Part shown: piece by piece, positions 666-17,240 of the stretch
Position numbering within the stretch: the stretch's first letter is position 1
How the letters are laid out: every line of letters starts with the position of its first letter
IMG/VR virus record: IMGVR_UViG_3300028392_000029
Coordinates: 159,177 to 223,176 of that record
Length of the DNA stretch: 64,000 nt
Direction: 5' to 3' (one strand)
Position numbers and translations under genes: made by a program
Notes under the pieces: generated by a model
Databases searched by the model: none
The model's input: the letters and a program-made list of their open reading frames with translations, nothing else
What the model was told of the DNA's origin: nothing

Positions 666-1055
666 TTAATACTTAATAAATGAACCATTTTCTCCGTCTT
701 CGGAGACCTCAATCCAAACCTCACGGCCTGGATACTTGCTGGAAATAGTATCAAACAAATCGCCTGACATCATCTCGCAACTCTTGTAGTCTAGTTGGAG
801 TGTACCCTCTGCGTACAATTTTTCCAACCAGCGTTTAAACTGAATAAACTCAATATCGCGATCATCGTGGGTGACACTAATCCACACTTTGAAGTGGAAT
901 GTGTGGCGATGCGGATAGCCTAGAAAACTTACATCATATTCATCACCTGTAGCAAGTGCTGTATCTGTAAGTGCGGCTGGATATTTGTGAATACCTTCTT
1001 TCTGAAAGGTAACCCAAATCATTTTGTTAGGACGAATGTCTTGTTTAATAATCAT
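666..1055 (-). CDS. QueD/PTPS-like T-fold protein
   Basis: GIHKYP...HRHTFHFKV...DIEFIQFK...SCEM...EVSEDGENG: three-His Zn pattern and T-fold glutamates; lies in the dpdA cluster. Confidence 0.65.
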   Translation of the reverse strand: MIIKQDIRPNKMIWVTFQKEGIHKYPAALTDTALATGDEYDVSFLGYPHRHTFHFKVWISVTHDDRDIEFIQFKRWLEKLYAEGTLQLDYKSCEMMSGDLFDTISSKYPGREVWIEVSEDGENGSFIKY

Positions 1056-1627
1056 ACAGTTTCTTCAAAGAGTGAGGTATAAGTTGATATAGCCATGTTT
1101 TCAAGTGTTTTCATATCTTCATCACTTAGTCTAAAAGAATAAGATTTAGACTTCGGTAAATGCACTTGTTCAAAATATCCGTAGAAACCTTCATAAGGTG
1201 TATACCCGATATTTTCATTCATTGTAATCAATGTTTTAGCATTGTTATATGCTTTTTCTATCAGTGCTTGAATGTGCGGAGCAGAAAAATCGTAAACTCT
1301 TGCTTCGATAATCACTCCGCCTTTAATTTTAATTCTTAACTGTTGTTGAAACTTTTTCCATACATGGGAATTCTTGTAGTCATTATTAATAATGTCTTCA
1401 GCATGCATATCTGCAATAGTTTGCGCACTAGTTGCATCAACATCTCGAGTTTTTACTTCAAGACCGTATACTAATATGTCTGCGCCATGACCTCGATTAA
1501 TAGGAACACCCATAGATTCAAGTAATGCTTCGACGGCTCTACCTGCATATCCGCCAGCACTTGCTGGTACTTTTTTGCCAATTAGTTGATCAGCAATTTT
1601 AAATACTTTTACTTTTGCCTTTATCAT
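1052..1627 (-). CDS. MutH/Sau3AI-like PD-(D/E)XK endonuclease
   Basis: GGYAGRAVEALLE...GADILVYGLEVKT matches the MutH/Sau3AI G-x2-G-x3-E...(P/A)D-x6-E-x-K core. Confidence 0.65.
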   Translation of the reverse strand: MIKAKVKVFKIADQLIGKKVPASAGGYAGRAVEALLESMGVPINRGHGADILVYGLEVKTRDVDATSAQTIADMHAEDIINNDYKNSHVWKKFQQQLRIKIKGGVIIEARVYDFSAPHIQALIEKAYNNAKTLITMNENIGYTPYEGFYGYFEQVHLPKSKSYSFRLSDEDMKTLENMAISTYTSLFEETV

Positions 1628-2148
1628 TTGATAACTTCATCGTTTTTATATTGAGACCAGTCTGTAAACTTACTTCTATCCATTAGCGTATGTAGACTGT
1701 GGGACCATACACCGGGATTAGTTGCCTTAAAATCTTTGTCATCTATTTTAAGCATTGTATTATAATTCCACAATTTAATGTAAGGAATTGGCACTCTTAT
1801 TTGCGGAATAAAGTTGTTGTAGTCATTCAATCCACCGTCATTAAACTCTTCTACAGCACTTAATGGAATATCTAGACTGCATATATAACCTTCTCCTAGG
1901 AAGTATTCAATCATTTCTTCCCATTTTTTCCAACCAGCATAGTCGTTGAATACTGGATTAAAACTGTGATTTGCACCAAAGAAAATATGCTCGCAATCAT
2001 TGTTCACTGCATGAAATGCAATTTGATCAATTTGTTGAATACCTGTAACAAACAAAGTTTTTAATCCGTATGCAGGAGTATGTTCAATTTCTGTGCCAAC
2101 AAAAAATGTCACTTGCTCGCTTACACCAGTTGTATAATCACGTTTCAT
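1624..2148 (-). CDS. Conserved phage hypothetical protein in the deazaguanine cluster
   Basis: 174-aa ORF overlapping both neighbours (FFVGTEIEHTPAYG...KIDDKDFKATNPGVW). Confidence 0.75.
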   Translation of the reverse strand: MKRDYTTGVSEQVTFFVGTEIEHTPAYGLKTLFVTGIQQIDQIAFHAVNNDCEHIFFGANHSFNPVFNDYAGWKKWEEMIEYFLGEGYICSLDIPLSAVEEFNDGGLNDYNNFIPQIRVPIPYIKLWNYNTMLKIDDKDFKATNPGVWSHSLHTLMDRSKFTDWSQYKNDEVIK

Positions 2149-2389
2149 TCTTTTCTGCCTTCGATCGTTCGTACACTTTAAACATTCTAGTTACATCTTC
2201 TATACGTTCAGCAAAATGCTCAGGAGCACCTCGAGCCGCCGCTTTCATATCATATTCTTCGGGATAGTGTCTTAAACAAGCTCGAGCACCGTCTTTGATT
2301 GCTTTTGGAACTCGAGGAGTAGTCAGGATCTCTAATAGAAATCTTTTAGTTTGTACTACTGCTCGATATCTTTCATCTGGTAACGTCAT
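2138..2389 (-). CDS. Hypothetical protein (83 aa), probably leaderless
   Basis: ATG lies 6 nt after a TATAAT -10 box. Confidence 0.7.
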   Translation of the reverse strand: MTLPDERYRAVVQTKRFLLEILTTPRVPKAIKDGARACLRHYPEEYDMKAAARGAPEHFAERIEDVTRMFKVYERSKAEKNET

Positions 2390-2395
2390 ATTTGT

Positions 2396-2423
2396 ATTAT
2401 ACAGTGATTGTAACTAAAATCAA
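2396..2423 (-). promoter_or_regulatory. sigma70-type promoter (TTGATT-N16-TATAAT), leaderless transcript
   Basis: Minus strand TTGATTttagttacaatcactgTATAATacaaatATG. Confidence 0.55.
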
Positions 2424-3640
2424 TCGTTTTGGCCAAGTTCGTCAAATATGAACGGCGAACCTTTAAAATAATTATATCCAAAAAACTCATCCATAATAGA
2501 TAAACTATGTGCTGAAAACAATATTGGGGGACCGTTTGCAGGTAATCCCATATCATATGCACGTTGGTTATAGGCCATTAGTTTTCTAAACTCGATATCT
2601 CCAGCTAGATTATCTTTTGAGTTTTGACTAGCTTGCCGCCAAAATTCTGTATCAAAATTACTACCACCGTGATAGATATAGTTAATAATACGTTCTAAAG
2701 TCTGTGCTAATCTAACTTGTTCAGCGTTGGCTTCTTCTTGATTCATTTGACCTGTAACATACTTAAAAATAATACCACATACGTTTGTATAGTGGTTAAT
2801 CGATGTTGCACTAATTGGTTCAAAGAATATAGCACGATTGCCGTTCTTGATAACTCTGTTATCAACTAATTTAGTAGTATAATAGGGTTTGAATTTATAC
2901 TCTTTAGTATCTAATTCGTCTATAGTTATTTTTAGCATTTCAGCCATGTCAGCTTTTGCATCTTCAACAGTAGTGATTGTGTCGTTAAACAAATAACCAT
3001 ATGTTTTTCTACTAGTTAACGGAATTCCAAACATCCATCCATTCTTGGTAGCAAAGTGTTCTGTGTACTGAATAGGATCAAATCTTTCAAAGCTATGTAC
3101 TAGACATCTGTTTAGAATACTGCAAGTACTCATATGATAGTCTTCAGAGTAGTCTGTAGGGAAACCTCTGCAATCTATAACATAATCAAATTCTTCATTG
3201 GTTCCATTTATTTCTACAATAGCTTTATCAGAATTATTAATAACATTAGTTACTGTGCCTTCAATTATGGAAAACTTTTGCGGCCAGCATAGAGCTAATC
3301 TTTCAAATACAAATTCTTTTAATTTAAAATTATTAAAATGTACAGCTACCCCGCCCTGTAGCAATGGGTTCAACCATTCCCACTTACGCCAGTTAATATA
3401 CTTTGTTCCAAATTTAAGTGTGCTATCTAATTTTGGAGTATCTTCAAGAGTTGTAAATCGTGTACCTTTTTCCAGTAAGCCAATAAATCCAGGATTAGTA
3501 CTTTCGCCAATTCCTAAAATAGGAATAGCTGGGTCATACAGTGAAACAATGTCCCATTCATTAGTAAGTGTTGAGCAAAGGTGCGACAATGTTAGCACCC
3601 CAGCACTACCTACTCCTAGTACACCAATACGTTTCTTCAT
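2420..3640 (-). CDS. Flavin-dependent tryptophan halogenase-family protein
   Basis: GVGSAG FAD motif, IGESTNP, DCRGF, GWMFGIPL, FFEPISATS. Confidence 0.8.
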   Translation of the reverse strand: MKKRIGVLGVGSAGVLTLSHLCSTLTNEWDIVSLYDPAIPILGIGESTNPGFIGLLEKGTRFTTLEDTPKLDSTLKFGTKYINWRKWEWLNPLLQGGVAVHFNNFKLKEFVFERLALCWPQKFSIIEGTVTNVINNSDKAIVEINGTNEEFDYVIDCRGFPTDYSEDYHMSTCSILNRCLVHSFERFDPIQYTEHFATKNGWMFGIPLTSRKTYGYLFNDTITTVEDAKADMAEMLKITIDELDTKEYKFKPYYTTKLVDNRVIKNGNRAIFFEPISATSINHYTNVCGIIFKYVTGQMNQEEANAEQVRLAQTLERIINYIYHGGSNFDTEFWRQASQNSKDNLAGDIEFRKLMAYNQRAYDMGLPANGPPILFSAHSLSIMDEFFGYNYFKGSPFIFDELGQND

Positions 3641-5262
3641 TTAACTTCTCCCTCTAGCTCGTCTAGTTTAGACATTTGATCTTCAGAAAACTCTCCATCT
3701 TCTACTTCAATCTCTGCTGTGCTTGTTCCTACTTCTTCAAACAAATTAGTAAACATTGATTGTGAGTTTAGTGTTTTCTTACCTGTAGCACCTCGAGTTC
3801 CAATAATACTCATCCAGAATCTGCTGTATTCTTCTACCACAGCATCTGCGGTGCCCCGGTCACTAGTTGCAAAGATAGCTTCGATTACATCTTTAAAATA
3901 TAATCTATCAAACTTTTCTTGTACTAGCATATTAGGACAACTGCCTAAATCATATTGTCGATTAGCTTCTTGTACTGCGTTCACATGCATCCAAACATTA
4001 TGACCCATCATAACAGCATAGGTAAAACTATCCCAACTTGTTCTATTACTGACTTTACCTAGTTTGTTAACGTCCGGCATTACTGTCCAGTGTGCGGGAT
4101 TATACGGATCTAGGATTGTTCCGGGTGGAACATTTGGATTTGGAGTACCAGCGTTGTAGATACAAATTTCATTCATAAGAACACCGTCCATAATTGGACT
4201 AGTTGTAAACTTAGGAAATATTTTATCCTGTATTACTGCGTCTTGGAAGAGTCTAGTATCTGTTGCGTATTTCTTGTCGTCAGCAGAAGCCTGCATACGG
4301 TAGACCCATTTTGTCCTATCGTCTGTTTCGACATTAGTATAGATTTGTCCGTTTGCTGTTGCAAGGAATGGACTTGCGCAGTCAAAAGAGATGGTAAAGT
4401 TTTCATTATGGTATTTCCTAACAGCACGTTGAATATCGGTTAAAAGAACTGCCCACTCTAACTTAGAGGTGCCTAGGAAGTGCATCCAATCATGTTGACC
4501 CTTTTCAAGGAGCCCATCGAATCGTAATGCCACTAATCTCTTTAGTACAAGGTGGATGTCACACATATTCTGCCCACCCATACCCCAACCGTTAAATGCA
4601 CGATCGCCGTATTGCGAGCGATCACAGTAACGTTTCATTCGTTGATACCAATCTTCGGCATCTGTATGCGTTTCACCTTGTAGTACGTTTAAGAACTTAC
4701 AGTTACCATTGCGATTATTAACAAAGTAATCGTTATTGATATATGTGCCTTGCACAGCCTCTGCATATGAACTAATGCCAGTTGCCGCAACACCTGCTGG
4801 ACTACGAGCAACCCAAGCTGGGATATCAAGACCCATGCCGTAGTCCATTAGTGTGTCCATCCAAGTAAGAACTTGCTGTCGCTTCTTCATAGCTTTAGGA
4901 CAGTTAGGATCTTTCCAGTCGGCTGGCCAAACACCTTTACCAATCTGGAATCCGCCTGAGTCACCTAATACCCAACTAGTACTACGATTACGATTTCGGA
5001 ACATGTCCTCGCTTTCATCTTGTTTATTCAAATCAAGATTAGCATGGCCTGCCGAATATAAACAGTGGTCATAATAAAATGCACCTTTATCTGGATCAAG
5101 ATAGTTAAGACTTTCAACACCGTTTTTAAAACTTTTAGGAATACGTGTAGGATCTACGTAATTGCTATAGCGTTGTTTTCCGATAAAGGTGCTATAAAAG
5201 CCGCTAGTTGCTGGCAAGAATACAGCATAGTCGTTTTGTGTTGCGGTAAGATTTCTATTCAT
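3637..5262 (-). CDS. dpdA: tRNA-guanine transglycosylase-like DNA 7-deazaguanine inserting enzyme (DpdA family)
   Basis: TGT motifs DSGGFQ, LDIP, FLNVLQG, GWGMGG, HFLGTS, SFDCASP; next to queD-like and replication genes. Confidence 0.8.
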   Translation of the reverse strand: MNRNLTATQNDYAVFLPATSGFYSTFIGKQRYSNYVDPTRIPKSFKNGVESLNYLDPDKGAFYYDHCLYSAGHANLDLNKQDESEDMFRNRNRSTSWVLGDSGGFQIGKGVWPADWKDPNCPKAMKKRQQVLTWMDTLMDYGMGLDIPAWVARSPAGVAATGISSYAEAVQGTYINNDYFVNNRNGNCKFLNVLQGETHTDAEDWYQRMKRYCDRSQYGDRAFNGWGMGGQNMCDIHLVLKRLVALRFDGLLEKGQHDWMHFLGTSKLEWAVLLTDIQRAVRKYHNENFTISFDCASPFLATANGQIYTNVETDDRTKWVYRMQASADDKKYATDTRLFQDAVIQDKIFPKFTTSPIMDGVLMNEICIYNAGTPNPNVPPGTILDPYNPAHWTVMPDVNKLGKVSNRTSWDSFTYAVMMGHNVWMHVNAVQEANRQYDLGSCPNMLVQEKFDRLYFKDVIEAIFATSDRGTADAVVEEYSRFWMSIIGTRGATGKKTLNSQSMFTNLFEEVGTSTAEIEVEDGEFSEDQMSKLDELEGEVK

Positions 5263-5613
5263 TTAGATCCAATGTTGTACTAGAACCATAAGACTTAACC
5301 AAGCCCACATGGTATTGAAACCGACTAGCGTTGGTAATGACTTTTTACGACTAGCCCAAATAAGTGTTACACTAGTTAACAAGGTTAGGTAGTATAATTG
5401 CCAGATTTGAATTCCAAAGATTAAACCTGGAATGATAATGATTGCCTTGGCCAGCCAACTGACAAATTCTACAGTATTGTAGCCAGTCCAATATTCTTTT
5501 GTAAACCACATCATATAGCAGTCACGCATATTTGCCCAACCGCTATGTGAGTAGCAAATTACCATTAACACTAGCCATACACCTACAGCTAATAAAATTT
5601 GATCAGTAGTCAT
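5263..5613 (-). CDS. Small multi-pass membrane protein
   Basis: 116 aa with about four hydrophobic segments; abuts both neighbours. Confidence 0.7.
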   Translation of the reverse strand: MTTDQILLAVGVWLVLMVICYSHSGWANMRDCYMMWFTKEYWTGYNTVEFVSWLAKAIIIIPGLIFGIQIWQLYYLTLLTSVTLIWASRKKSLPTLVGFNTMWAWLSLMVLVQHWI

Positions 5614-6344
5614 TATTTGCTTAGTGCAGGTAAAATATAATTGTATTCAGCAACACCGCTGTCTACAGTAATTTGCATGGCACCTGAGTCCGAAATCTTC
5701 ATAGTCAAATCTCCTGGCAATGCTAAAATACTTTGTACTTGTTGTACAGGCCATGACAATGTCTGACGCATTTTTCCAGTAATTCCAGATTGGAAAGTAA
5801 ATGATCCAGCATGTGTGCTTGCATCGCCGAAACTAAACACTAGATCGCTGCCGTCAGTTTTAACTTGGAAACTAGATTCTTCAGTATGAGCTGCCGCCTG
5901 GTATTTTAATTTTTGGATCGATGCGACTGTAGGTTGTACTTCGACATCCCAGCTAACACCTTTGAATTTGACGGTTTTAAGTTTTTCATTAATAACTTCG
6001 TTATTCATAAAACGATAATCGTTTTCAAAGTCACCGGTCGCATTTTGAAAATGCAAGCCTGTTGGAACTTCTTCACCGTTACGTTGTTGTTTAACAACTT
6101 TAATACCGGCGCCTTCTTTGTACTCCGGGCATTTCAAATGCAAATCTAATTTATTAAGTTGTGGCATTCCAAACACACCTTCGAAATTATCAACTGGGTT
6201 ATGTGTTTTTGCACTGAAAATAACTGAACGGTCTTCAGCCATTGATTCAATTGCGGTTTCTTTGTCGCTGGCACTTACTTTAACTAAAGGCAGGAAGCCC
6301 AGGTTGTGTGTATGTGCTACTAGGTCTTGTAAAAAGTCTTTCAT
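5613..6344 (-). CDS. Sliding clamp (gp45/PCNA-like)
   Basis: About 243 aa with a beta-rich two-domain pattern and C-terminal YNYILPA; close to polB; a clamp loader is also present. Start set at MKDFLQ, which has a GGAG SD. Confidence 0.6.
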   Translation of the reverse strand: MKDFLQDLVAHTHNLGFLPLVKVSASDKETAIESMAEDRSVIFSAKTHNPVDNFEGVFGMPQLNKLDLHLKCPEYKEGAGIKVVKQQRNGEEVPTGLHFQNATGDFENDYRFMNNEVINEKLKTVKFKGVSWDVEVQPTVASIQKLKYQAAAHTEESSFQVKTDGSDLVFSFGDASTHAGSFTFQSGITGKMRQTLSWPVQQVQSILALPGDLTMKISDSGAMQITVDSGVAEYNYILPALSK

Positions 6345-6364
6345 ATGATTCTCCATGTTTAATG

Positions 6365-6393
6365 ATTATACTTAGGTTTTTTGACTATGTCAA
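6365..6393 (-). promoter_or_regulatory. sigma70 consensus promoter for the clamp-dpdA operon
   Basis: TTGACA-tagtcaaaaaacctaag(17)-TATAAT. Confidence 0.85.
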
Positions 6394-6396
6394 TGT

Positions 6397-7170
6397 TTAT
6401 TTTCTTATTTTGTTGTTGTATTTCACCACTTCTTCTACAACGGTTACAGGGGTATTTAGGTTTTTTGCATAATGTATGAAAGCATTTGTGTCTTTAGGAA
6501 AACACGCTCCGCCAAACCCAAACAATCCATCGGATCCAGGCACGTTCATATGGCTTAATCCAATTCTAGTATCTGCAGAGACTAACTGTTTGACTAATTC
6601 ATAGTCTGCACCGTTGGCCTGACATACTTCATAAATTTGATTAAAAAACGCTACCTTTGTACTTAAAAAACTATTAATTGAATATTTGATCATACTAGCT
6701 TCCGTAATACTACACGGGAGAAAGAATTCGCATTTTTTAAGAACAGATGAAAATAAGTTTTCCCAGAAACTATTGAAATCTTCTCCGCCGATAATCATAT
6801 ATTCTTGATTTAAGAAATCTTCATCAGCAGTTGCCGCACGTAGAAATTCTGGACTATAACAAATATGATGATTAGGATAATCGACTAATATTTGAGATAG
6901 CTGATCCGGGGGTATAGTTGACTTAATTAAAACTGGTAAATTATCCGGCGTATTTTCTAATACTGATCGTATCTGTGTGTCGTCACAACTACCGTTGGGC
7001 AAACTTGGTGTACCTACACATATGATAACACCTTCTCCTGTTTTGTAATCAGATACACTACTAGTGTTGATCTTTGGATCAACAATGTGAATAGTATGCT
7101 CAGCCGCCAATGCTAGACCAACCGCCTTACCTACAAATCCATAACCTGCAATTATAATTTCTTTTTTCAT
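6397..7170 (-). CDS. ugd: UDP-glucose/GDP-mannose dehydrogenase family (short form, C-terminal domain absent)
   Basis: GYGFVG Rossmann motif, ICVGTP, KSTIPP, SPEFLR, GFGGACFPKD with catalytic Cys; start set at MKKEII (7170). Confidence 0.85.
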   Translation of the reverse strand: MKKEIIIAGYGFVGKAVGLALAAEHTIHIVDPKINTSSVSDYKTGEGVIICVGTPSLPNGSCDDTQIRSVLENTPDNLPVLIKSTIPPDQLSQILVDYPNHHICYSPEFLRAATADEDFLNQEYMIIGGEDFNSFWENLFSSVLKKCEFFLPCSITEASMIKYSINSFLSTKVAFFNQIYEVCQANGADYELVKQLVSADTRIGLSHMNVPGSDGLFGFGGACFPKDTNAFIHYAKNLNTPVTVVEEVVKYNNKIRK

Positions 7171-7171
7171 A

Positions 7172-9841
7172 TTAGAACTCAAATAAACTGTTAAATGTGT
7201 TTTTTTCTTCTGTACTACGGACATCCCATTTAAGTACACCGATAAGATTTTCTAGTTTTTTATCTATAATGGCTTGTTCCATTTCAGTATGGTTAAAAGG
7301 CAAATCCTTAAACCATTGCGGCAATCTGAGCTCATCTACTGGATAAGCTACGCTTGTGAATCCCAAAGGATTGTCTTTAAGTTTGCAGACGATAACTTTT
7401 GCACCATCTGTAATAGCCATGCTATATTTGTCATCAAACATACGTTTAAGTGTGTTCCAATTAATGCTTGCACGAACATGCCCGGGCATATTAGCCTTAC
7501 CAGCCTTTACTTCCTTAGCCTGATATTCTGTAATGTTATTGGCACGTTTAGGACTACCTTTCTCCCAACCGGGACGAACTTTAAAACGTGTTCGGAATTC
7601 AGTGATGTGGGCTAGTACAGTATTTTCGTCAGCACCGGTTAGCACCAACTCAAGAACATCACTTAAAAAGTTTTGAATAAACTCAGGTGTATCACTACGC
7701 TTGAGATCCAGCCCCATGGCTTTGATCTTGCCAGGCTTGCCATCTACGTCTGCACGTTTGCCTTCTTTGTCATAATACAACACTGCATAGCGTTTCTTAG
7801 TAATAAACAGACCTTTAATTGCAACAATCTCACGACCAGCTTTGATAACTTCACCGCGTGACTTTGGCACATGGAATGTATCTAACATGAACTGTGGAAA
7901 GGTAGTATTAACTTCTTCACCAATCTGGTCATATAGCTGAACAACACTTTCTTTAGTCCAGGGAATAACTTTTGAATTGATATCTTTTTGCAGAGTTTTA
8001 TAAGCACTAAAATAGCACGAGTCTGTATCACCGTAAATAATAGCCTTGCCCCTGTAGTCATACTCGCCGGCCACAATCTCATTGACCTTGCCAGCCATGT
8101 GCTTGACAATTTGTCTGCCTGTCAGTGTGGTTGACTGCCCGATACGCTTGTCAAAGAATCTACAGCCACTATTAAGAATAGCACCATACAAACTGTTCAA
8201 GTTAATCTTCTTGACCAACTGACGTTTGTCCCAATATTCTTCTTCAATCTTGTTGCCTGCCTTGATAGCATCTTTTAGTTTGGCCTGCATCTCCTTACGT
8301 TCGGCATACCAACGTTTGAGCAAGCCGGGGATAATGCCTTCTGTTTCGTGTGTAAAGATAGTACCATTAGCACTTAACATCCACGGCTGATTGCTTTCAA
8401 ATATAAGTCTATAGACTTCCGCGGCACTGAGCACATCACTATCACCGTTTTGCCAATCAATAGTAATGTCTGTGCCAATTTGTTGTTCCATTACGGCTGT
8501 ATATTCTAGTGATCCGAAGATACCTTCCCATGCCGCCGCAAATGATTTACCTTTTCCAATTTGCGCTTCAATATAATCGTCAGTTAATGTCTGACGTAAT
8601 TGTCCAACAATAGTTTCCGGACCCATATTCAATGCACGAATGGCTGATGGGTAAAGACTATTAATATCTAGGGAACCAATCCAATCATGAATACCTTCTT
8701 TAGGGACAGCGACATACGCACCTGCGGCTCCTTCATTATCTTCTCGATCATCCATCTTAGTTCGATTGGGTACTTGGAATCCTCTTCGATGGGCTTCGTT
8801 GATAATTGCTTGCTCAGTTACAGCTACCGCACCCATTGTGGTCTGTAGCAACACAGTACACTCATGTGCCAGTGTGTTGGCAAGATCCATAAACTTTAGT
8901 TTCTTGTCTAGATCGTCAAGCAGTTTACAGTCGTTACGGTTGTACTCAATGAACGTTTTAAAGTCATTGTTGTATAATTGGTCGAGCGTACCTTCATATT
9001 GTGTTTTACGTTGACCTAGTTCATATTCCGCGATGGCGTCAAGTCTATAACTGTGGCGTTCTTCATACGTATACTTACGGTACAGCTCAAGATAGTCTAA
9101 GTGAACGCGACCAATGTAGTCATAGGTTACACTATCACGACCAAACTTTTCATATTCTCTGCGTTTAGGAAATTGGTCAAATAAACAAAAACGTCGGGTA
9201 TCTTCTTTGCTTAGTGCTTTAGTAACACGATTAGTTGTGTAGGGAATATCAAAACCTTCACTATTCCACCCACTTAGTACATCAGCATCTTTAATCAAAT
9301 CAAGAAAAACATCTAGCATTTCTGCTTCTGTTTTATAAAGCATTGTGTTAGGGAAGTCTTTAACTTGCTCTAACGCTTCTTCCATGGTAATAGTCTTTGG
9401 AGGAACTGCTAGACATACCATGGTTTCCATCCACTGTAGGTAGACAGCAATCGCAGTAATTGGCATGAACGCATCGTCTGGACTTGCATAGCCACGCTCT
9501 GGATCAAAGTCTACCTCAATATCGAAAAACGCTACGTTTAGTTTAGGAGCATCTTGATTAATGTAGTTTTCGCTTAGGCAAACAAAGATGGGATTAATAT
9601 CTGCTTCAAATAATTGCTTACCTGAATTAATTGCTTGTTCTTTGCGTAGTTCTTTTGTATTTTTACAGATAACCCTGTTAAGTGGGTCGCCGTAGATTGA
9701 TTGATATTTGCCCTTGGGGTCTTTGTAGTAAAACGTGTGTTTGACAGGTATGTCACGGAACTCACGCTCACCTTTCTTATTGCGTTCGACAACTTTAATA
9801 ACATCGTTATTACGGTCAAACCATGCATCTACATAGCTCAT
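7172..9841 (-). CDS. polB: Family B DNA polymerase (T4 gp43-like)
   Basis: ExoI DIEV, ExoII WNSEGFD, ExoIII YNRND; DINSLYPS, KINLNSLYG, YGDTDS, KKRY. Confidence 0.97.
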   Translation of the reverse strand: MSYVDAWFDRNNDVIKVVERNKKGEREFRDIPVKHTFYYKDPKGKYQSIYGDPLNRVICKNTKELRKEQAINSGKQLFEADINPIFVCLSENYINQDAPKLNVAFFDIEVDFDPERGYASPDDAFMPITAIAVYLQWMETMVCLAVPPKTITMEEALEQVKDFPNTMLYKTEAEMLDVFLDLIKDADVLSGWNSEGFDIPYTTNRVTKALSKEDTRRFCLFDQFPKRREYEKFGRDSVTYDYIGRVHLDYLELYRKYTYEERHSYRLDAIAEYELGQRKTQYEGTLDQLYNNDFKTFIEYNRNDCKLLDDLDKKLKFMDLANTLAHECTVLLQTTMGAVAVTEQAIINEAHRRGFQVPNRTKMDDREDNEGAAGAYVAVPKEGIHDWIGSLDINSLYPSAIRALNMGPETIVGQLRQTLTDDYIEAQIGKGKSFAAAWEGIFGSLEYTAVMEQQIGTDITIDWQNGDSDVLSAAEVYRLIFESNQPWMLSANGTIFTHETEGIIPGLLKRWYAERKEMQAKLKDAIKAGNKIEEEYWDKRQLVKKINLNSLYGAILNSGCRFFDKRIGQSTTLTGRQIVKHMAGKVNEIVAGEYDYRGKAIIYGDTDSCYFSAYKTLQKDINSKVIPWTKESVVQLYDQIGEEVNTTFPQFMLDTFHVPKSRGEVIKAGREIVAIKGLFITKKRYAVLYYDKEGKRADVDGKPGKIKAMGLDLKRSDTPEFIQNFLSDVLELVLTGADENTVLAHITEFRTRFKVRPGWEKGSPKRANNITEYQAKEVKAGKANMPGHVRASINWNTLKRMFDDKYSMAITDGAKVIVCKLKDNPLGFTSVAYPVDELRLPQWFKDLPFNHTEMEQAIIDKKLENLIGVLKWDVRSTEEKNTFNSLFEF

Positions 9842-10295: not shown

Positions 10296-12089
10296 TTACG
10301 GTGCTGGAGCCGGCGCCGCCTTTGGAAGTGAATCAATAGCAGTTTGTGCGGATTGTAATGCGGCGTTAATGCCGGCATCGTTGCCGTCATCTGGTAATTG
10401 AGCCATGATTTTTCTAATCTCGTCAACCATTGCTGTTTGTTCCGGTGTTGGTCCAACTGGCACTACAGGAGCTACTGGTTTGTTTGGATCTACTACTGGT
10501 TTATTTGGATCAACTGGTTTATTTGGATCAACTGGTTTATTTGGATCAACTGGTTTATTTGGATCAACTGATGGATCTGGACCTTGTCCTTTATTTGGAG
10601 TTAACGCAAGACCAGCGGCACCTCCTAATGCTGCCGCACCTAATGCAGTTTTAACTGGGTTCTTTGCAATTGCTGAACCTACGCCCATTCCTTTAAGTGC
10701 CGCATTTGAAGGAGCTCTTTCAGCGCCAGCTTTTGCCATTGCTTGCACCTGGGCAGGCGTATACTTTGCTACTTTGTTTGCTCCACGGCCAGTAGTTTGC
10801 GCCGCTAATTTGTCAGCTGACTTTTGAAAGGCAGCTTTGTCTACAGTATTAGCTAATCCTGGTTGGCCTTTCAACCCCTTCCAAGCCGCACTACCAAAGT
10901 CTGCTATATCACCAAAGATACCTTCATCTAGTGTTAATGGTTTGTTCTTTACACTTTCCCAGATGTGTTTTACTGTTGTAGTGTCTGTAACTAAGTCACC
11001 GTTGGTTCTATAAAAATTACCATCAGTGCCTAAGAAATATTCTTTGTCTAATGTTGACATAGCTTCTAACATTTCTAAACGATTGCGTAGACGAACAATA
11101 GACTCGGCAGCAGATTCTGCGGCAGGCATTGTGACTCCATATTGCTTCATAGCGGCTTGAGTCATCGGACCCATTTTGCCATCAGCTTTAATCTTAGCAC
11201 CTTTCTTGATTAGTTCATTTTGTACAGCAAATACTTTAGCATCTCCACCAGGTGGAACTGCAGGTTTACTATCAAACTCACCATGTTTGTAATCACGAGC
11301 TAAGTTGGCGGCATCTAATCCTAATGATGCGGCAGTGCCAATTCCTGGAACTAAACTAGCTAGACCACTGGCACCAGCCATACCGGCACCTAACCAATCA
11401 CCTTTCTTAGCGCGATTATACGCATCGGCAGCACCGAATGCTAAACCAACACCAGGGATAGCTTTGCCTAACATTTTACCAACACCTTTAGCGCCAGCGT
11501 ATGTTGCGCCACCGACGGCAGCTTGTTGTGCTAGGCTTGCTTCGCTTTCAGTTTGATAACCAAAACTCTCAATCAATCTACGCGAGTTAAAAGATTCCTT
11601 AACGGCTGCAGGAGTTTTTAATGATGCTTGTAATTTTTGTACTAGATCTGCCAACTTAGTCATGTTGGCTTGATTTTGCTCGTTACTGTTTAGTGTAGCA
11701 TTAGTTCTATCGCTTTGTGTTTGTACATCCTTGTCGTACTTACCACCACTTACGCCAAACAGTCTACCAAGGAATGAACTCTTGTTTGCATTCTTAGGAA
11801 CTAGACCTAAATTAGCTAATTTTTGGTCATCTTCTTTGCTAGCAGTAGTACTGATACGTGCTGTTGGCTGTCCGCCGTCGCTAGCCGGGTTTAATACAGC
11901 AGAAACATAGTTACCGCTTACTGGATCATACAATCCTGGCAAGCCGTTTTTCTCAGCCATCTGTTGTAGTGTAAGTGAACGAGCTTGTTCATTACTAGCA
12001 CCTTGTACGGCAGCTTCTACATCTCGCAATCTAATACCTTCGGATAGTTCGATTGCATCTAGTTTGTTCATTAATTCACGAATGTTCAT
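10296..12089 (-). CDS. Putative virion internal/ejection protein with a peptidoglycan-binding-like module
   Basis: Start MNIRELMNKL (12089); Gly/Ala-rich membrane-like segments; VQNELIKKGAKIKADGKMGPMTQAAM is PG_binding_1-like; VDPNKP repeats. Confidence 0.6.
   Translation of the reverse strand: MNIRELMNKLDAIELSEGIRLRDVEAAVQGASNEQARSLTLQQMAEKNGLPGLYDPVSGNYVSAVLNPASDGGQPTARISTTASKEDDQKLANLGLVPKNANKSSFLGRLFGVSGGKYDKDVQTQSDRTNATLNSNEQNQANMTKLADLVQKLQASLKTPAAVKESFNSRRLIESFGYQTESEASLAQQAAVGGATYAGAKGVGKMLGKAIPGVGLAFGAADAYNRAKKGDWLGAGMAGASGLASLVPGIGTAASLGLDAANLARDYKHGEFDSKPAVPPGGDAKVFAVQNELIKKGAKIKADGKMGPMTQAAMKQYGVTMPAAESAAESIVRLRNRLEMLEAMSTLDKEYFLGTDGNFYRTNGDLVTDTTTVKHIWESVKNKPLTLDEGIFGDIADFGSAAWKGLKGQPGLANTVDKAAFQKSADKLAAQTTGRGANKVAKYTPAQVQAMAKAGAERAPSNAALKGMGVGSAIAKNPVKTALGAAALGGAAGLALTPNKGQGPDPSVDPNKPVDPNKPVDPNKPVDPNKPVVDPNKPVAPVVPVGPTPEQTAMVDEIRKIMAQLPDDGNDAGINAALQSAQTAIDSLPKAAPAPAP
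10474..10566 (-). repeat. 18-bp tandem repeat encoding VDPNKP
   Basis: actggtttatttggatca in four perfect copies at 10495-10566, plus one degenerate 21-bp copy. Confidence 0.95.
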
Positions 12090-12090
12090 T

Positions 12091-13170
12091 TTATTTTCCT
12101 TTATTTGGTACACAGTTAGGTACTGACTTGCTGCCTTTTTTCTTTGTACCAACCATTTTATAACCTTTCCAGCACGGATCATTCATCATTTCATCTATGC
12201 CAGCAGGTATGTTTCTGCTGTTTGAGCCGCCGGCTCGACGTTTAGCACCCAATTCTCCTAGACCATGACTAATTTGTTCAATATTCATAGCAAGTTCGGG
12301 GAACAGCTTAGTAATATGTTGCCATATTCTAGGATCATCACTTTGAGCCTGTTCTGCTAGATCTTTTAATTGTCTACGAGCTCGCATAATGCGATACTCG
12401 ATACTACCTGGATTCGCACCTTTATGACTGTGAATAGTACTGGACATAGGGTTTTCACGATCAAAGTCTAATGGAGTTTCTGCCACATTACCTTGTAGAC
12501 CAGGGCCGCCTGGCCCAGGTTTAAATCCCATGTTGTCAGATAACCCTTCTTGCATGGTCTTTAACAGCTCTTGGGCTTTTTCAATGCTAATCATATAACG
12601 GCCGAGTCTGTTTGGATCAGCGGCTTTTTCTAACCACTCTTTACTATAACCAGTTGGTGCTGGAGTTGGAGCCGCCGACGGCACGACTGGTTGTTTACCT
12701 TGTTCTCTTGCTGTTAGTTCAGCCTGCGCATCAGCTACACTAACCATGTATCTTCCAAGTCTGTTTGGATCGGAGGCTTTGCGCAACCATTCTGTATCAA
12801 ACCCACTTAAATCGGCACCTTCTTTTATACGTTGCGTCGACTCTCTCATTAAGACACGTTCAGCAATAGTCTGAGCGTATTGTTTATACATTGTATTTTT
12901 TTGTGTCAATCTTTTGGTAGCATCTGTTTCAGCTTGATCAAAATACTTTCTGATACTCGATTCACGAGTAATATTTGAAACAGGAGTAGTAATAGGTTGG
13001 CCAACAACAGGTTGCTGATAGTGTTGCATTGCCATTTGTACTGGCAATGTTACTTTGTGTGGATTGCTGCCTTCGTTGATAATAGAAAGAAACTTGGACA
13101 TGCTATCAACGCCTTCCACAGGCTTCGAAGATGCCCCATCCATCGCCTGTAGAATACGTTTCATGTCCAT
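12091..13170 (-). CDS. Putative head-internal protein with a duplicated 30-aa module and a C-terminal CWKGY...PNCVP motif
   Basis: EWLxKAxDPNRLGRYMxS occurs twice; several [ILM]xE sites. Confidence 0.6.
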   Translation of the reverse strand: MDMKRILQAMDGASSKPVEGVDSMSKFLSIINEGSNPHKVTLPVQMAMQHYQQPVVGQPITTPVSNITRESSIRKYFDQAETDATKRLTQKNTMYKQYAQTIAERVLMRESTQRIKEGADLSGFDTEWLRKASDPNRLGRYMVSVADAQAELTAREQGKQPVVPSAAPTPAPTGYSKEWLEKAADPNRLGRYMISIEKAQELLKTMQEGLSDNMGFKPGPGGPGLQGNVAETPLDFDRENPMSSTIHSHKGANPGSIEYRIMRARRQLKDLAEQAQSDDPRIWQHITKLFPELAMNIEQISHGLGELGAKRRAGGSNSRNIPAGIDEMMNDPCWKGYKMVGTKKKGSKSVPNCVPNKGK

Positions 13171-15214: not shown

Positions 15215-15508
15215 TTATTTTCCTACAGGTTTTTCGCCAGTTAAGTACGGCTTACTAAACCACAGTTGAAACCATTCTGGGGTTCCGGGACGAATATGAT
15301 GCTTACGCTCTAGCTCTTGTTTGCTCATACCAGTAACACTGATATTACTGCCTTGATTAGCACGGTATTCGTGTAGTCTAGCTTCGCCACCTAACCCGCC
15401 TAGTCCTGCTAGTGCTTTCATTTCGTGTATAGGATCACTCGGATCTAAATAGCAGTCATCTGAACTATCTTGATTTAAATCCTGCGTAGTAATTCTATAC
15501 TGTTTCAT
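15215..15508 (-). CDS. Hypothetical protein (MKQYRIT...IRPGTPEWFQLWFSKPYLTGE)
   Basis: Start set at 15508, overlapping the dps stop. Confidence 0.65.
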   Translation of the reverse strand: MKQYRITTQDLNQDSSDDCYLDPSDPIHEMKALAGLGGLGGEARLHEYRANQGSNISVTGMSKQELERKHHIRPGTPEWFQLWFSKPYLTGEKPVGK

Positions 15509-15945
15509 TTTAAACTTGACCTCAGCATCCAACTGTGCTTCTTATGTGCATCCTGTCGATCAGCTAAGAAATTACTCAGCCCGTGGTCACCATGCGCTTC
15601 AGCCATATCAAACGTAATGCGAAATATCTCAGCCATTCTGTCACTATCTGTTAATAATTCTTTTAGCATACCGCTCCAATCTGGTACATGATTTTCATCT
15701 TCTACCACAGTCAGCATACTGAATTTTTGTAAACTAGCCGGTGTATAAATCTGTAGAGCACGTAGATGTTCCGCAAACGGATCAATTGCACCATATACTT
15801 CCTCGTATATGGTTTGAAACAGTTCGTGTAACTGACCAAACAACGGTCCTTCTACATTCCAGTGAAAGTTATGCGCTTTTAGATAAAAACTAAATTCACT
15901 AGCAAAAGCTGTTTTTAATGATAAGTGATATTTGTCGTGTTCCAT
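15505..15945 (-). CDS. dps: Dps family ferritin-like DNA-protection protein
   Basis: KAHNFHWNVEG, LHELF, D-x3-E ferroxidase residues, HKKHSWML. Confidence 0.92.
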   Translation of the reverse strand: MEHDKYHLSLKTAFASEFSFYLKAHNFHWNVEGPLFGQLHELFQTIYEEVYGAIDPFAEHLRALQIYTPASLQKFSMLTVVEDENHVPDWSGMLKELLTDSDRMAEIFRITFDMAEAHGDHGLSNFLADRQDAHKKHSWMLRSSLK

Positions 15946-17240
15946 TATATACCGTATTTGTTTCTTTTGGCTTTATTTACAGGGCTAGTTTTGTTAGTGT
16001 CAGCGGGCTCTTCGCTCTTGCTAAACTTGCTAATTGTTTTTCCATCAGTGGGGACAGTTTTCATAGCCGATCGAATCTTATTATCGTCTTCTTTGGTGTA
16101 AGGATGATGTGTATTATACTTTTCAGCCCAGGTATCTTGCGGACTGTCTACAGCTTTTATACTCTCGCCGTCGGCCATGGCCATGGCCATCATCATGCGA
16201 TTCATGTGATAGATACGATCGTACCCGCCGATATCGCGTGTTCGAATTACGCCCAGGCTGGCGGCATCGTGGTGGGGGTGTCGATGACTAGTTTTACCTT
16301 CGCGTACAAATTCGTTAGCTTTCATTTCTCTTAATACCCTGTTAGCTTCTTTAATCAAATTAAAGGCTTTTAAATTCTTTTTTGGTGTACTACTATTTAC
16401 ATCAACTGTACTATTCTGTTTTGTAATAGTGCCGACCCCGGCAGCTTCTTCGTCAGTTTTAGTATATACTTGTTGCGGTTTTTTATGCCCCTCACCTCGT
16501 TCCATTTTATCAGGATCTTTGGATTTTTCTTTTTCAAAGTACTTGCGCATTTCTTCTGCACTGGTCGTTGGCTTAGCTTTAACAGGTTTAGTCATGAATC
16601 CCATTAAGCCTTCATCAGTTACTGGTTCTGCTACAGGTTTTTCTTTTTTAGCTCGTTTTACTTTTTCAGGATGTTGGCCTACTGCGGCTACTACTGTATC
16701 AAAATAGTGTTGACCATTTACTTCTAGATTAGGATCTGTACCAGCGGCTCGATAAAATGCGTCCATGTTACCAGCACGAGCCGCATTGCGTAGATCAGTT
16801 GCTGAGCTTACTCTGGGACTTGGTATATGGATGATTTTAGCAAAGTTAAAATAACCATGTGTACTTTCCTTGCCATTGTATTGATTTAATAATTTTCCAG
16901 CCCATGCCCAGTCAGTTGCATCAGTTATATAAGCTACAGTTGCACCATCTCCAACTTCTGCATAAATCTTAGAGGCCAGTGTGATAACTGTAGATTCACC
17001 TAACACATGTCCTTCAATGCTGGGATCAATTGCAGACATCCATGCTGCCTTAACATCAAACGGCAACGGATCGTTGGTGCCGGTTGTACTAGGATTAGTA
17101 CCTATGTACCATTGATGACCTGCATGTTTAACAGCTTCCCAAACTTTGGCATGCCCTTGATGCGGTGGATTGAACCGACCAAAGCAGAATGCCGCAGTTA
17201 CCTTAGTATGAGTTGATTCAAAAAGTTCACGTAAATTCAT
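15945..17240 (-). CDS. HxGH cytidylyltransferase-like nucleotidyltransferase fused to a second capsid-tagged module
   Basis: FGRFNPPHQGH, DPLPF, VSSATDLRNAA; internal MKANEFVREG at 16325. Confidence 0.75.
   Translation of the reverse strand: MNLRELFESTHTKVTAAFCFGRFNPPHQGHAKVWEAVKHAGHQWYIGTNPSTTGTNDPLPFDVKAAWMSAIDPSIEGHVLGESTVITLASKIYAEVGDGATVAYITDATDWAWAGKLLNQYNGKESTHGYFNFAKIIHIPSPRVSSATDLRNAARAGNMDAFYRAAGTDPNLEVNGQHYFDTVVAAVGQHPEKVKRAKKEKPVAEPVTDEGLMGFMTKPVKAKPTTSAEEMRKYFEKEKSKDPDKMERGEGHKKPQQVYTKTDEEAAGVGTITKQNSTVDVNSSTPKKNLKAFNLIKEANRVLREMKANEFVREGKTSHRHPHHDAASLGVIRTRDIGGYDRIYHMNRMMMAMAMADGESIKAVDSPQDTWAEKYNTHHPYTKEDDNKIRSAMKTVPTDGKTISKFSKSEEPADTNKTSPVNKAKRNKYGI

Follow-up and report, generated by a model that had tools for sequence, protein, structure and literature searches.

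In a giant phage, the DNA polymerase, a divergent enzyme of the type that swaps guanine for 7-deazaguanine in DNA, and an optional nuclease carry the same short peptide at or near their C-termini, of the kind that docks T4 polymerase onto its sliding clamp, which suggests that DNA modification is physically coupled to replication. The peptides lie on the minus strand of the window, i.e. the whole 64-kb stretch of viral DNA that was analysed: the family B polymerase PolB (7172-9841, 889 aa) ends in NTFNSLFEF (7175-7201), the 541-aa DpdA-like protein (3637-5262) carries SMFTNLFEE (3733-3759) 32 residues before its acidic C-terminus, and the 191-aa nuclease (1052-1627) ends in STYTSLFEETV (motif at 1061-1087). 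The pattern [FY][TN][SN]LFE occurs exactly three times in all six-frame ORFs of 40 aa or more in the window, and only in these proteins, whereas from amino-acid composition 0.008 occurrences are expected in ORFs of 60 aa or more and 0.0007 within the last 45 residues of the roughly 64 real genes. Although the pattern was defined after the peptides had been seen, the excess is far too large for this to explain it. A looser pattern, [FYWLIM]xx[LIMF]F in the last 45 residues, adds only two further long minus-strand ORFs, neither of which looks like a C-terminal hydrophobic-acidic tail: a halogenase-like protein with MDEFF 19 residues from its end and ORF 15505-15972 with MAEIF 38 residues from its end.

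The original prediction, made from the sequence alone, was thus correct in its observation of the three peptides and in placing the putative clamp gene between polB and the DpdA-like gene. Its interpretation, that the base-inserting enzyme and a restriction-like nuclease both ride the phage clamp, thereby coupling deazaguanine installation to the fork and allowing the nuclease to tell modified from unmodified strands, is only partly supported. The assigned identities of the proteins hold, and the tail is conserved in orthologues of all three, a condition on which the prediction had been staked; clamp binding, however, is inferred by analogy, the picture of a fixed modification-plus-restriction system is weakened, and MutH-like strand discrimination remains speculation.

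Gene content of the replication and modification block

PolB is a T4/RB69-type polymerase, recovered with the Pfam DNA_pol_B (1e-37) and exonuclease domain (2e-19) models and with phrog_262 (1.5e-198). It aligns to RB69 gp43 up to residue 888 of 903, leaving 18 and 15 unaligned residues as equivalent C-terminal tails, and the tail is kept in 78 related loci as TFN[SKNQ]LF[DE]F. Between polB and the clamp gene lies an accessory gene (6397-7170, minus strand, with a likely start MKKEIII at 7170) for a short UDP-glucose/nucleotide-sugar dehydrogenase-like protein (Pfam UDPG_MGDP_dh 2.6e-23; NCBIfam TIGR03026 1e-42, below cut-off), a homologue of which was found in 48 of 83 loci, in some of them elsewhere in the locus at about 38-41% identity. 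The 247-aa product of 5613-6356 (minus strand; many relatives start at the MKD at 6344) is predicted to fold as a two-domain PCNA/gp45-like sliding clamp: the AF2 model has a pLDDT of 91.9 and pTM of 0.89, its top 50 Foldseek hits against PDB are all PCNA or viral clamps (E 1.9e-11, TM 0.6-0.7, with 484 hits at E<=1e-3), and its ESM Atlas feature hits are gp45/PCNA clusters at 0.93-0.98. Searches with its sequence returned no Pfam, NCBIfam or PDB hits. The clamp gene is next to polB in 121Q-like phages, Phosso, Atu_ph07, PA5oct and Vibrio 2.275.O. It is followed by an accessory gene (5263-5613, minus strand) for a 116-aa hydrophobic, membrane-like protein, which is present in 27 of 83 loci and gave no Pfam, PHROG or NCBIfam hits.

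Multiple lines of evidence indicate that the 541-aa protein is a very divergent DNA guanine transglycosylase of the TGT/DpdA family (DpdA3-like). It has the DSGGFQ motif, with D101-S-G-G-x-Q106 and D294 invariant in 94 diverse relatives, and its AF2 model (pLDDT 90.4) displays a TIM-barrel core (about residues 1-490), followed by a low-confidence, probably disordered linker (residues 490-526, with a short helix at 503-507) in which the motif lies, and then an acidic helical tail. The top 15 Foldseek hits are all tRNA-guanine transglycosylases (E 2.5e-6, probability 1.0), and profile-profile comparison with hhalign gives 96.5% (E 8e-10) with ACP17 DpdA and 86.6% (E 4e-6) with phiST DpdA3. The gene neighbours 7-deazaguanine synthesis genes here and in PA5oct, Vibrio 2.275.O and four of the related loci (labelled with the prefix L in this study; L086, L090, L099 and L100), and the same contig holds DpdL, FolE and a QueE-like radical-SAM gene. 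DpdL (666-1055, minus strand, 129 aa) is a QueD-like predicted 7-carboxy-7-deazaguanine decarboxylase; it carries LGYPHRHTF, matching the LxxxHRHxF signature given for DpdL (PMC10516641), hits phrog_17812 (7e-32), and in tblastn searches recovers the DpdL genes of phiST, ACP17, PA5oct and Phosso.

Three further minus-strand genes separate dpdA from the nuclease gene. The first (2420-3640) codes for a 406-aa FAD-dependent tryptophan-halogenase-like protein (Pfam Trp_halogenase 4.2e-30; phrog_2928 1.8e-71) and is an accessory insert found in only 7 of 83 loci. The second (2138-2389) codes for an 83-aa BPSL0761-family protein (NCBIfam NF041728 4e-18), a conserved member of the module present in 65 of 83 loci. 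The third (1624-2148), whose stop overlaps the nuclease start, codes for a 174-aa conserved protein that travels with DpdA in 75 of 83 loci but has no Pfam or PHROG hit and only an equivocal ESM Atlas result at 0.82. Proteins with a similar C-terminal end, as judged by eye only, are ACP17 ASD50402, encoded just upstream of DpdA, and a 174-aa protein encoded just downstream of DpdA in L091; same-sized genes precede the nuclease in L099 and L100.

The nuclease is a MutH/Sau3AI/BcnI-like PD-(D/E)XK protein in which D50-x6-E57-x-K59 is invariant across 26 aligned relatives. Its own match to Pfam MutH is below the cut-off (E 0.0063; 16.8 against 23 bits), but 6 of the 26 relatives hit MutH (best 3.6e-5), and its ESM Atlas structural neighbours are a MutH-domain cluster (TM 0.65) and MvaI/BcnI (TM 0.58). 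The gene lies between the 174-aa gene and dpdL with overlapping stop and start codons, an arrangement also seen in L099 and L100.

Conservation and lineage-specific agreement of the tail

We then examined whether the peptide is maintained in evolution. Among close DpdA orthologues 113 of 120 keep a tail motif, mostly F[ANT]NLF[DE], and some relatives with a non-homologous basic linker nevertheless again end in NPSLFE, FANLFDE or FDDLFEV. At longer range, 52 of 104 diverse family representatives have the motif in the last 60 residues, against 18.8 +/- 3.8 in shuffled tails, and 32 of 104 have [LIMF]F within the last 6 residues, against 6.0 +/- 2.3. About half of the diverse DpdA-like representatives therefore lack the motif; the DpdA-like tails of KVP40 and pf16 show no clear LF motif, and phiST DpdA3, which achieves complete replacement, has no such tail, indicating that clamp docking is not a general requirement of DpdA enzymes. 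As a negative control for the proposed clamp link, two motif-less family members lie in integrase islands with no polB or clamp nearby.

The tail recurs on DpdA in distant lineages, including cultured phages, and resembles each phage's own polymerase tail more than the tails of other phages. Thus, the polymerase and DpdA tails are PSLDDLFE and TTLDELFE in ACP17, NNTDLFDW and NNNDLFGW in Vibrio 2.275.O, LDDLFDF and VNNLFDFS in L086, and HFDSLFGW and SFNSLFDV in PA5oct. A permutation test over 9 lineages gives P=0.004, although it rests on nine hand-anchored pairs, two of which, Phosso and L099, score negatively. In the first 150 kb of the 156-kb ACP17 genome the only annotated genes that end this way are PolB, DpdA and one other protein.

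In the nuclease family an ST[FY]-type tail is visible by eye in nearly all complete members, down to 39% identity, the exceptions being the truncated family member P0127 and weakened variants such as P0169. As this tail follows a conserved helix (LExMAxST), it could be partly structural. The nuclease gene itself is an accessory cassette, present in 8 of the 67 loci where its slot can be read, and in about 38 loci the stop of the 174-aa gene overlaps the dpdL start with no insert. The slot is an insertion hot spot that also holds an HNH gene in L030, an HNH_3 gene in L082 and a GIY-YIG gene in L077. In a 97%-identical phage one cassette is exactly swapped for another, with the MutH-like gene replaced by that of an unrelated HNH nuclease ending in the same tail (LDPNLFEEIL).

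Interpretation of the shared tail and its potential partner

Given this variable occupancy of the slot, it is possible, though we regard it as the less likely view, that the nuclease is a selfish, homing-type endonuclease that happens to lie in the modification operon and is not a restriction or repair partner of DpdA; any clamp tail would then serve its own spread, for example by cutting at replicating DNA, and this could be true even if the tail does bind the clamp. Against this, the family keeps the same position in the deeply diverged phages of L056, L099 and L100, at 39-60% identity, and the L082 HNH_3 and L077 GIY-YIG genes, which look like ordinary homing endonucleases, lack the tail that the MutH-like and L030 HNH proteins have. 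Further, a distant homologue sits beside an array of DNA methyltransferases, which again links the family to DNA modification, and the MutH/BcnI family is known for restriction and repair enzymes, not homing. A less probable alternative is that the tail is a real interaction peptide with a different partner, such as the host beta clamp, the phage single-strand-binding protein, the clamp loader or another replisome hub: the xSLF core resembles the bacterial beta-clamp motif QL[SD]LF, and ACP17 gp32 also ends in SALFED, so that such partners are not excluded. However, the polymerase is of the T4/RB69 gp43 type, whose equivalent tail binds gp45, the clamp gene is adjacent to polB and dpdA across lineages, and the tails differ between phages but match within a phage, as expected for co-evolution with a phage-encoded partner. 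Coincidence, local composition or recent duplication of a DNA segment is contradicted by the excess over chance, the conservation of the motif in hundreds of orthologues of each protein and in unrelated linker contexts, and its recurrence in cultured phages of other hosts.

The closest precedent is the set of T4/RB69 clamp ligands gp43, gp55 and gp33, which share interchangeable hydrophobic-acidic C-terminal epitopes on variable, unstructured linkers, the epitope still working when placed internally (PMC2988020); as here, the polymerase is among several proteins of one phage that share the peptide, and the clamp is a trimeric-type two-domain protein. What is new relative to this clamp "tool-belt" principle is that the additional proposed clients are a DNA base-exchange enzyme and nucleases rather than transcription factors, that the clamp is so diverged that the Pfam gp45 and PCNA models miss it, and that in this phage the DpdA motif is internal. 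DpdA3 and the ACP17-type phage DpdA are likewise divergent TGT-like enzymes encoded with FolE, QueE and DpdL (Cui et al. 2023, PMC10516641), but the present protein is much longer (541 aa against 259 aa in phiST), bears a linker-plus-tail extension and matches phiST DpdA3 only partially. The main text of that study does not contain the word "clamp" and hence describes no clamp motif there, and we found no paper linking DpdA to a sliding clamp. An interaction of T4 alpha-glucosyltransferase with gp45, proposed from earlier in vitro work (reference 20 of a 2025 preprint), would similarly couple a phage DNA-modifying enzyme to the clamp, but was not reproduced in vitro or in vivo in that preprint (10.64898/2025.12.06.692756), and no shared polymerase-like tail is known for it. 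In eukaryotes, DNMT1 and UNG2 are tethered to PCNA by a PIP box so that a base-modifying or base-removing enzyme acts on newly replicated DNA, with a different clamp-binding consensus and with chemistry other than base exchange by transglycosylation. The nuclease shares with MutH, Sau3AI and BcnI-MvaI the D-x6-E-x-K motif and a MutH-like predicted fold, but no MutS or MutL gene was seen in the window or the retrieved flanks; a C-terminal clamp-type peptide on a nuclease has a precedent in the PIP motif of the clamp-bound archaeal NucS/EndoMS.

In light of these observations we propose, with moderate confidence, that the window carries the replication-and-modification block of a freshwater jumbo phage, in the order polB, sliding clamp, DpdA-type guanine transglycosylase, two small conserved proteins and DpdL, and that DpdA is most likely a second client of the PCNA-like clamp. 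While the motif, its conservation, its agreement with the polymerase tail, the gene context and, at the level of models and structural comparisons, the folds are established by the present analysis, clamp binding, replication coupling, the identity of the inserted base and the substrate of the nuclease are inferences. The polymerase peptide (xxFxxLF[D/E]x) follows the thumb domain, in the same position and with the same chemistry as the gp45-binding tails of T4/RB69 gp43, gp55 and gp33, and DpdA carries the same peptide on its predicted disordered linker. We infer that the MutH/BcnI-like protein, as an optional third client inserted in a variable slot of the same operon, is a modification-sensitive nicking or cutting enzyme that uses the clamp to reach replicating or nicked DNA. 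In this view, the clamp, left on newly made duplex, would hold DpdA on the DNA so that guanines are exchanged directly behind the fork for a 7-deazaguanine base, probably 7-deazaguanine itself, made from CDG by DpdL.

Identity of the proteins in the replication and modification block

The observation that three neighboring proteins share a C-terminal peptide was confirmed, with all three peptides lying at the stated coordinates on the minus strand: PolB (7172-9841) ends in NTFNSLFEF, the 541-aa DpdA-like protein (3637-5262) contains SMFTNLFEE 32 residues before its acidic end, and the 191-aa predicted nuclease (1052-1627) ends in STYTSLFEETV. The pattern [FY][TN][SN]LFE occurs three times in the six-frame translation of the whole 64 kb, and only in these three proteins, against 0.008 occurrences expected from composition, indicating that the observation is not a product of chance. 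The window is identical to IMG/VR contigs from freshwater-type metagenomes and belongs to the jumbo phages whose T4-like PolB is closest to those of Phosso, Atu_ph07 and the 121Q group; however, a Megablast search with its first 10 kb against GenBank phages returned no match. PolB is a gp43-type polymerase which aligns to RB69 gp43 up to residue 888 of 903, making its last 18 residues the positional equivalent of the RB69 clamp-binding tail (PMC2988020).

The 247-aa protein (5613-6356, minus strand) was recovered by neither Pfam, NCBIfam nor PDB sequence searches, but its AF2 model, generated for the monomer (pLDDT 91.9), displays the two topologically similar beta-alpha-beta domains of the PCNA/gp45 clamps, with Foldseek matching PCNA and viral clamps at E 1.9e-11, TM 0.6-0.7 and 484 hits. 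No clamp-loader gene was identified in the window, the 757-aa AAA+ protein at 19490-21763 (minus strand) being a Lon-like ATP-dependent protease (phrog_4871, 6e-248). The PA5oct homolog of the clamp is annotated as a "structural protein" on the basis of mass spectrometry. The replication block also contains two accessory inserts, namely a short UDP-glucose-dehydrogenase-like gene between polB and the clamp gene (6397-7170, minus strand) and a gene for a 116-aa hydrophobic protein between the clamp gene and dpdA (5263-5613, minus strand). In some relatives polB itself is interrupted, by a Hef-like homing endonuclease in PA5oct (locus L001:1-4834) and by inteins or extra ORFs in the related loci L087 (4955-9154) and L100 (34-4121). 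Elsewhere the window codes, on the minus strand, for a 3934-aa giant ORF (41863-53667) and a 628-aa protein with PNKPVD repeats and an endolysin/peptidase-like segment (10296-12182), and it contains no tRNA genes.

The DpdA-like protein belongs to a large family of 954 clusters at 50% identity that is likewise missed by Pfam (including the TGT profile PF01702), NCBIfam and PHROG searches, and neither phmmer nor a 94-sequence profile recovered any TGT from the PDB. Hence, its identity was derived from fold comparison, invariant motifs and hhalign comparisons with phage DpdA. Its AF2 model (pLDDT 90.4) has a TGT-type TIM-barrel fold, with the top 15 Foldseek PDB matches all being tRNA-guanine transglycosylases (E 2.5e-6, probability 1.0, TM by target about 0.5). 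Across 94 diverse relatives D101-S-G-G-x-Q106 (DSGGFQ in this protein) and D294 (in SFDCASPF) are invariant, matching the catalytic aspartates of the TGT DSGG[FY]Q motif and of the xFDxxxP-like motif bearing the nucleophile, although this equivalence is by motif. The TGT zinc-binding CxCxxC...H signature is absent, as there is no CxCxxC in the sequence, the cysteines being at positions 67, 121, 188, 213, 234, 295, 367 and 442. hhalign links the family to the DpdA of ACP17 (96.5%, E 8e-10), aligning the DSGG and S-x-D motifs of the two. Comparison with the DpdA3 subfamily, which includes phiST CGPG_00065 and the Campylobacter phage DpdA3, yielded a partial match to phiST gp042 (86.6%, E 4e-6) over 83 columns only. 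Thus, the original assignment of this protein as DpdA is right, although it is a very divergent, DpdA3-like member.

Contextual information is consistent with this assignment. The 129-aa QueD-like protein encoded at 666-1055 (minus strand) carries LGYPHRHTF, corresponding to the LxxxHRHxF signature which in DpdL, the predicted CDG decarboxylase, replaces the CxxxHGH motif of QueD (PMC10516641); by tblastn it shows 56% identity to ACP17 DpdL and 30% to phiST DpdL. This suggests that the phage DNA contains 7-deazaguanine or another CDG-derived base, as in phiST. FolE (2.6e-39) and a QueE-like radical-SAM gene lie 5-7 kb beyond the window edge on the identical contig L005 (19121-19858 and 20579-21424). 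Homologs of the DpdA-like gene are adjacent to QueE in PA5oct and to QueF, YhhQ, QueC and FolE in Vibrio phage 2.275.O, and 7-deazaguanine synthesis genes likewise neighbor the homologs in the related loci L086, L090, L099 and L100. PA5oct DNA resists enzymes with G in their recognition sites (PMC12191111), which is only indirect evidence for guanine exchange.

Two further genes, coding for a 174-aa protein (1624-2148, minus strand) and an 83-aa BPSL0761-family protein (2138-2389, minus strand), are conserved partners of DpdA, occurring in 75 and 65 of 83 loci respectively, and may be undescribed components of the modification pathway. An ESM Atlas search with the 174-aa protein gave no firm match, at 0.82, but ACP17 ASD50402, encoded just upstream of DpdA, and a 174-aa protein encoded just downstream of DpdA in the related locus L091 have C-terminal ends that look similar to it by eye. 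Between dpdA and the 83-aa gene, the closest relatives carry an FAD tryptophan-halogenase-like gene (2420-3640, minus strand; 7 of 83 loci), whereas other relatives carry, further downstream between the 83-aa and 174-aa genes, a pair of oxidoreductases (GFO_IDH_MocA-like plus ADH_N; L060:7425-9181). These are candidate enzymes for further decoration of the modified base.

The 191-aa protein possesses a D50-x6-E57-x-K59 motif in the MutH arrangement, which is invariant in 26 relatives and was found by pattern in 72 of 74 family members. Its matches to Pfam MutH are weak, with the window protein scoring E 0.0063 and 16.8 bits against a cut-off of 23, and 6 of 26 relatives matching, at best with 3.6e-5; a profile search of the PDB returned nothing. 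The structural neighbors of its ESM Atlas model, which is of moderate confidence (pLDDT 0.66), are a MutH-domain cluster (TM 0.65) and MvaI/BcnI (TM 0.58).

Conservation of the C-terminal peptide

We then examined whether the tail is retained across orthologs. In PolB, 78 related loci end in TFN[SKNQ]LF[DE]F. Among close DpdA orthologs, 113 of 120 retain a tail motif, mostly F[ANT]NLF[DE], and a subgroup has replaced the acidic tail with an unrelated basic linker, yet again ends in NPSLFE, FANLFDE or FDDLFEV. This is the behavior of a short linear motif rather than of a folded element, and in the model of the window DpdA the motif lies in a disordered stretch (residues 490-526). Searches of IMG/VR for loci related to the PA5oct and Vibrio DpdA proteins found nothing, and that with Phosso gave only two loci; accordingly, contigs encoding diverse family representatives were examined instead. 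Among 104 diverse full-length representatives, 52 carry [FYWLIMV]xx[LIMF]F in the last 60 residues, against 18.8 +/- 3.8 in shuffled tails, and 32 have [LIMF]F within the last six residues, against 6.0 +/- 2.3. In the nuclease, an ST[FY]-type tail is visible by eye in nearly all complete members of the 74-member family, down to 39% identity, the exceptions being the truncated member P0127 and weakened variants such as P0169.

Where both genes could be read in one genome, the PolB and DpdA tails resemble each other: they end respectively in PSLDDLFE and TTLDELFE in ACP17, NNTDLFDW and NNNDLFGW in Vibrio 2.275.O, LDDLFDF and VNNLFDFS in L086, AMKLFNY and AKSLFEF in L087, and LSTFFEF and NLSLFEF in the related locus L089, while in PA5oct PolB ends in HFDSLFGW and DpdA carries SFNSLFDV. 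Scoring the residues flanking the LF anchor and permuting the pairing over nine lineages gave a within-genome score of 71 against a permuted mean of 14 (P=0.004), albeit with a small sample, anchors set by hand and two pairs (Phosso and L099) that score negatively. The gene order polB-clamp-dpdA holds in the window, in 80 IMG/VR loci, and in PA5oct, Vibrio 2.275.O, L086, L087, L089, L099 and L100. As a negative control, two motif-less family members were found in integrase-bearing islands with no polB or clamp nearby. A subgroup of motif-less representatives (P0258, P0270, P0271, P0283 and P0296) shares a different, W-x-T-D-L-E-E-F-like C-terminal pattern, and one of these, P0270, lies in an integrase-bearing bacterial island (L104); this may be a different docking peptide for a different partner.

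The tail is also of restricted occurrence in the ACP17 genome, although metagenomic contigs limit whole-genome searches for further clients. In the first 150 kb of the 156-kb ACP17 genome the only annotated genes ending this way are PolB, DpdA and one protein annotated as gp26-like (ASD50409, L097:38633-39394), which ends in GLDDFFV. Polymerase-like tails were further noted in ACP17 gp32 (L097:47935-48906), which ends in SALFED, and in the 135-aa Phosso gp228 (L095:9051-9458), which is encoded inside the FolE-QueE cluster and ends in NLNDLFDFG. The tail is not universal among DpdA proteins, as phiST DpdA3 has none; the DpdA-like tails of KVP40 and pf16 show no clear LF motif, which in the absence of a comparison with their polymerase tails neither supports nor refutes generality.

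A variable slot between the 174-aa gene and dpdL

In the 67 loci where the slot between the 174-aa gene and dpdL can be read, 8 contain the MutH-like gene, and these represent about four distinct phages. In about 38 loci the two flanking genes overlap directly with no insert, and the rest contain small ORFs or other endonucleases. In L030, a phage 97% identical to the window, the MutH-like gene is replaced exactly by that for a 136-aa HNH endonuclease (PF01844, 9e-7; L030:13636-14046), which ends in TLDPNLFEEIL, the same tail on an unrelated fold. Two further accessory families in this region also end in LF tails, namely one of about 174 aa and a 195-aa protein (L013:12112-12636, L047:11855-12379, L077:9300-9815 and L015:12318-12905 in related loci; the ends include GGLFDGA, GSLFDES and DNIFE, and NEIFS in the 195-aa protein). 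These have no Pfam or PHROG hit and are unrelated to the MutH-like family by hhalign. In contrast, an HNH_3 gene in the related locus L082 and a GIY-YIG gene in L077 lack the tail.

Despite this sporadic presence, the MutH-like gene retains the same position, with overlapping stop and start codons, in the deeply diverged phages L056, L099 and L100. Its most distant homolog (P0194; L101:9455-10690) follows an array of five Eco57I-type N6-adenine methyltransferase genes, and both it and the adjacent 180-aa methyltransferase-like protein end in a lysine-rich linker followed by TGLFSIEE or NSTLFS.

A proposed clamp tool-belt and its alternatives

In light of the above, the interpretation originally offered, in which the base-inserting enzyme and a restriction-like nuclease both ride the phage clamp, is partly supported, and we propose a clamp tool-belt as the best-supported reading. 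In this view, the PCNA-like clamp would bind the polymerase tail, as in T4 and RB69, DpdA would use the same peptide to stay on freshly replicated duplex and exchange guanines there, and optional nucleases would use it too. The peptides have the characteristics of the T4 epitopes, being short, hydrophobic and acidic, at or near the C-terminus, on a variable or unstructured linker and shared with the polymerase tail. Work on T4 shows that such epitopes are interchangeable between proteins, sit on unstructured linkers and still function when internal (PMC2988020), which fits the internal position of the motif in this DpdA. Whereas the three peptides and their excess over chance are established by the sequence analysis, the binding of the peptides to the clamp, the formation of a closed, loaded trimeric ring by the latter, the guanine exchange activity on DNA, the coupling of modification to replication, the identity of the inserted base as 7-deazaguanine and the substrate of the nuclease are all inferred.

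Of the alternatives, it remains possible that the nuclease is a selfish homing-type cassette, as its sporadic presence between conserved genes would suggest, with cleavage of the endonuclease-free allele being only a supposition. The partner of the tail could be another hub, such as the host beta clamp, whose QL[SD]LF motif is similar. Chance and recent DNA duplication were rejected, given the low expected number of occurrences and the recurrence of the motif on unrelated linkers. The further suggestion of MutH-like strand discrimination has no support beyond family resemblance: no MutS or MutL gene was seen in the window or the flanks examined, and an accessory gene is unlikely to carry out a core repair function.

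Shared clamp tails on gp43, gp55 and gp33 are textbook T4 biology, and clamp-tethered modification has eukaryotic precedents in DNMT1 and UNG2; what differs here is that a DpdA-type protein and predicted nucleases carry the polymerase-like tail. Full-text literature searches found no paper linking DpdA or deazaguanine insertion to a sliding clamp, and the principal study of DpdA3 never mentions a clamp in its main text (PMC10516641), while Iyer et al. had already noted a deazaguanine synthesis and incorporation system in PA5oct. A more speculative, and on present evidence doubtful, extension is that clamp-tethered, replication-coupled base exchange is how this long DpdA3-like clade replaces guanines efficiently after synthesis, with the same tool-belt recruiting interchangeable modification-sensing nucleases (MutH-like, HNH and at least two unknown families with the same tail). 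Together these would form a phage-encoded, replisome-coupled modify-and-cut system that removes unmodified host, competitor or unrepaired DNA. This could also explain why ACP17 dpdA plus dpdL gave no detectable 7-deazaguanine in E. coli when expressed without the phage clamp (PMC10516641).

Phage 7-deazaguanine DNA is thought to be made after replication by DpdA enzymes, but how some phages reach near-complete replacement and why DpdA3-type enzymes have resisted reconstitution are open questions (PMC10516641). The tail, which is conserved in hundreds of metagenomic relatives, can serve as a search handle for further clamp clients, including nucleases whose specificity for modified or unmodified DNA could be useful as reagents. 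Its presence on DpdA gives a concrete and cheap hypothesis, testable in the cultured phages ACP17, PA5oct and Vibrio 2.275.O, that modification is coupled to the replisome through the sliding clamp. The only earlier phage claim of this kind, the binding of T4 alpha-glucosyltransferase to gp45, was proposed from earlier in vitro work but was not reproduced in 2025; the coupling posited here would be a viral counterpart of that between DNMT1 and PCNA.
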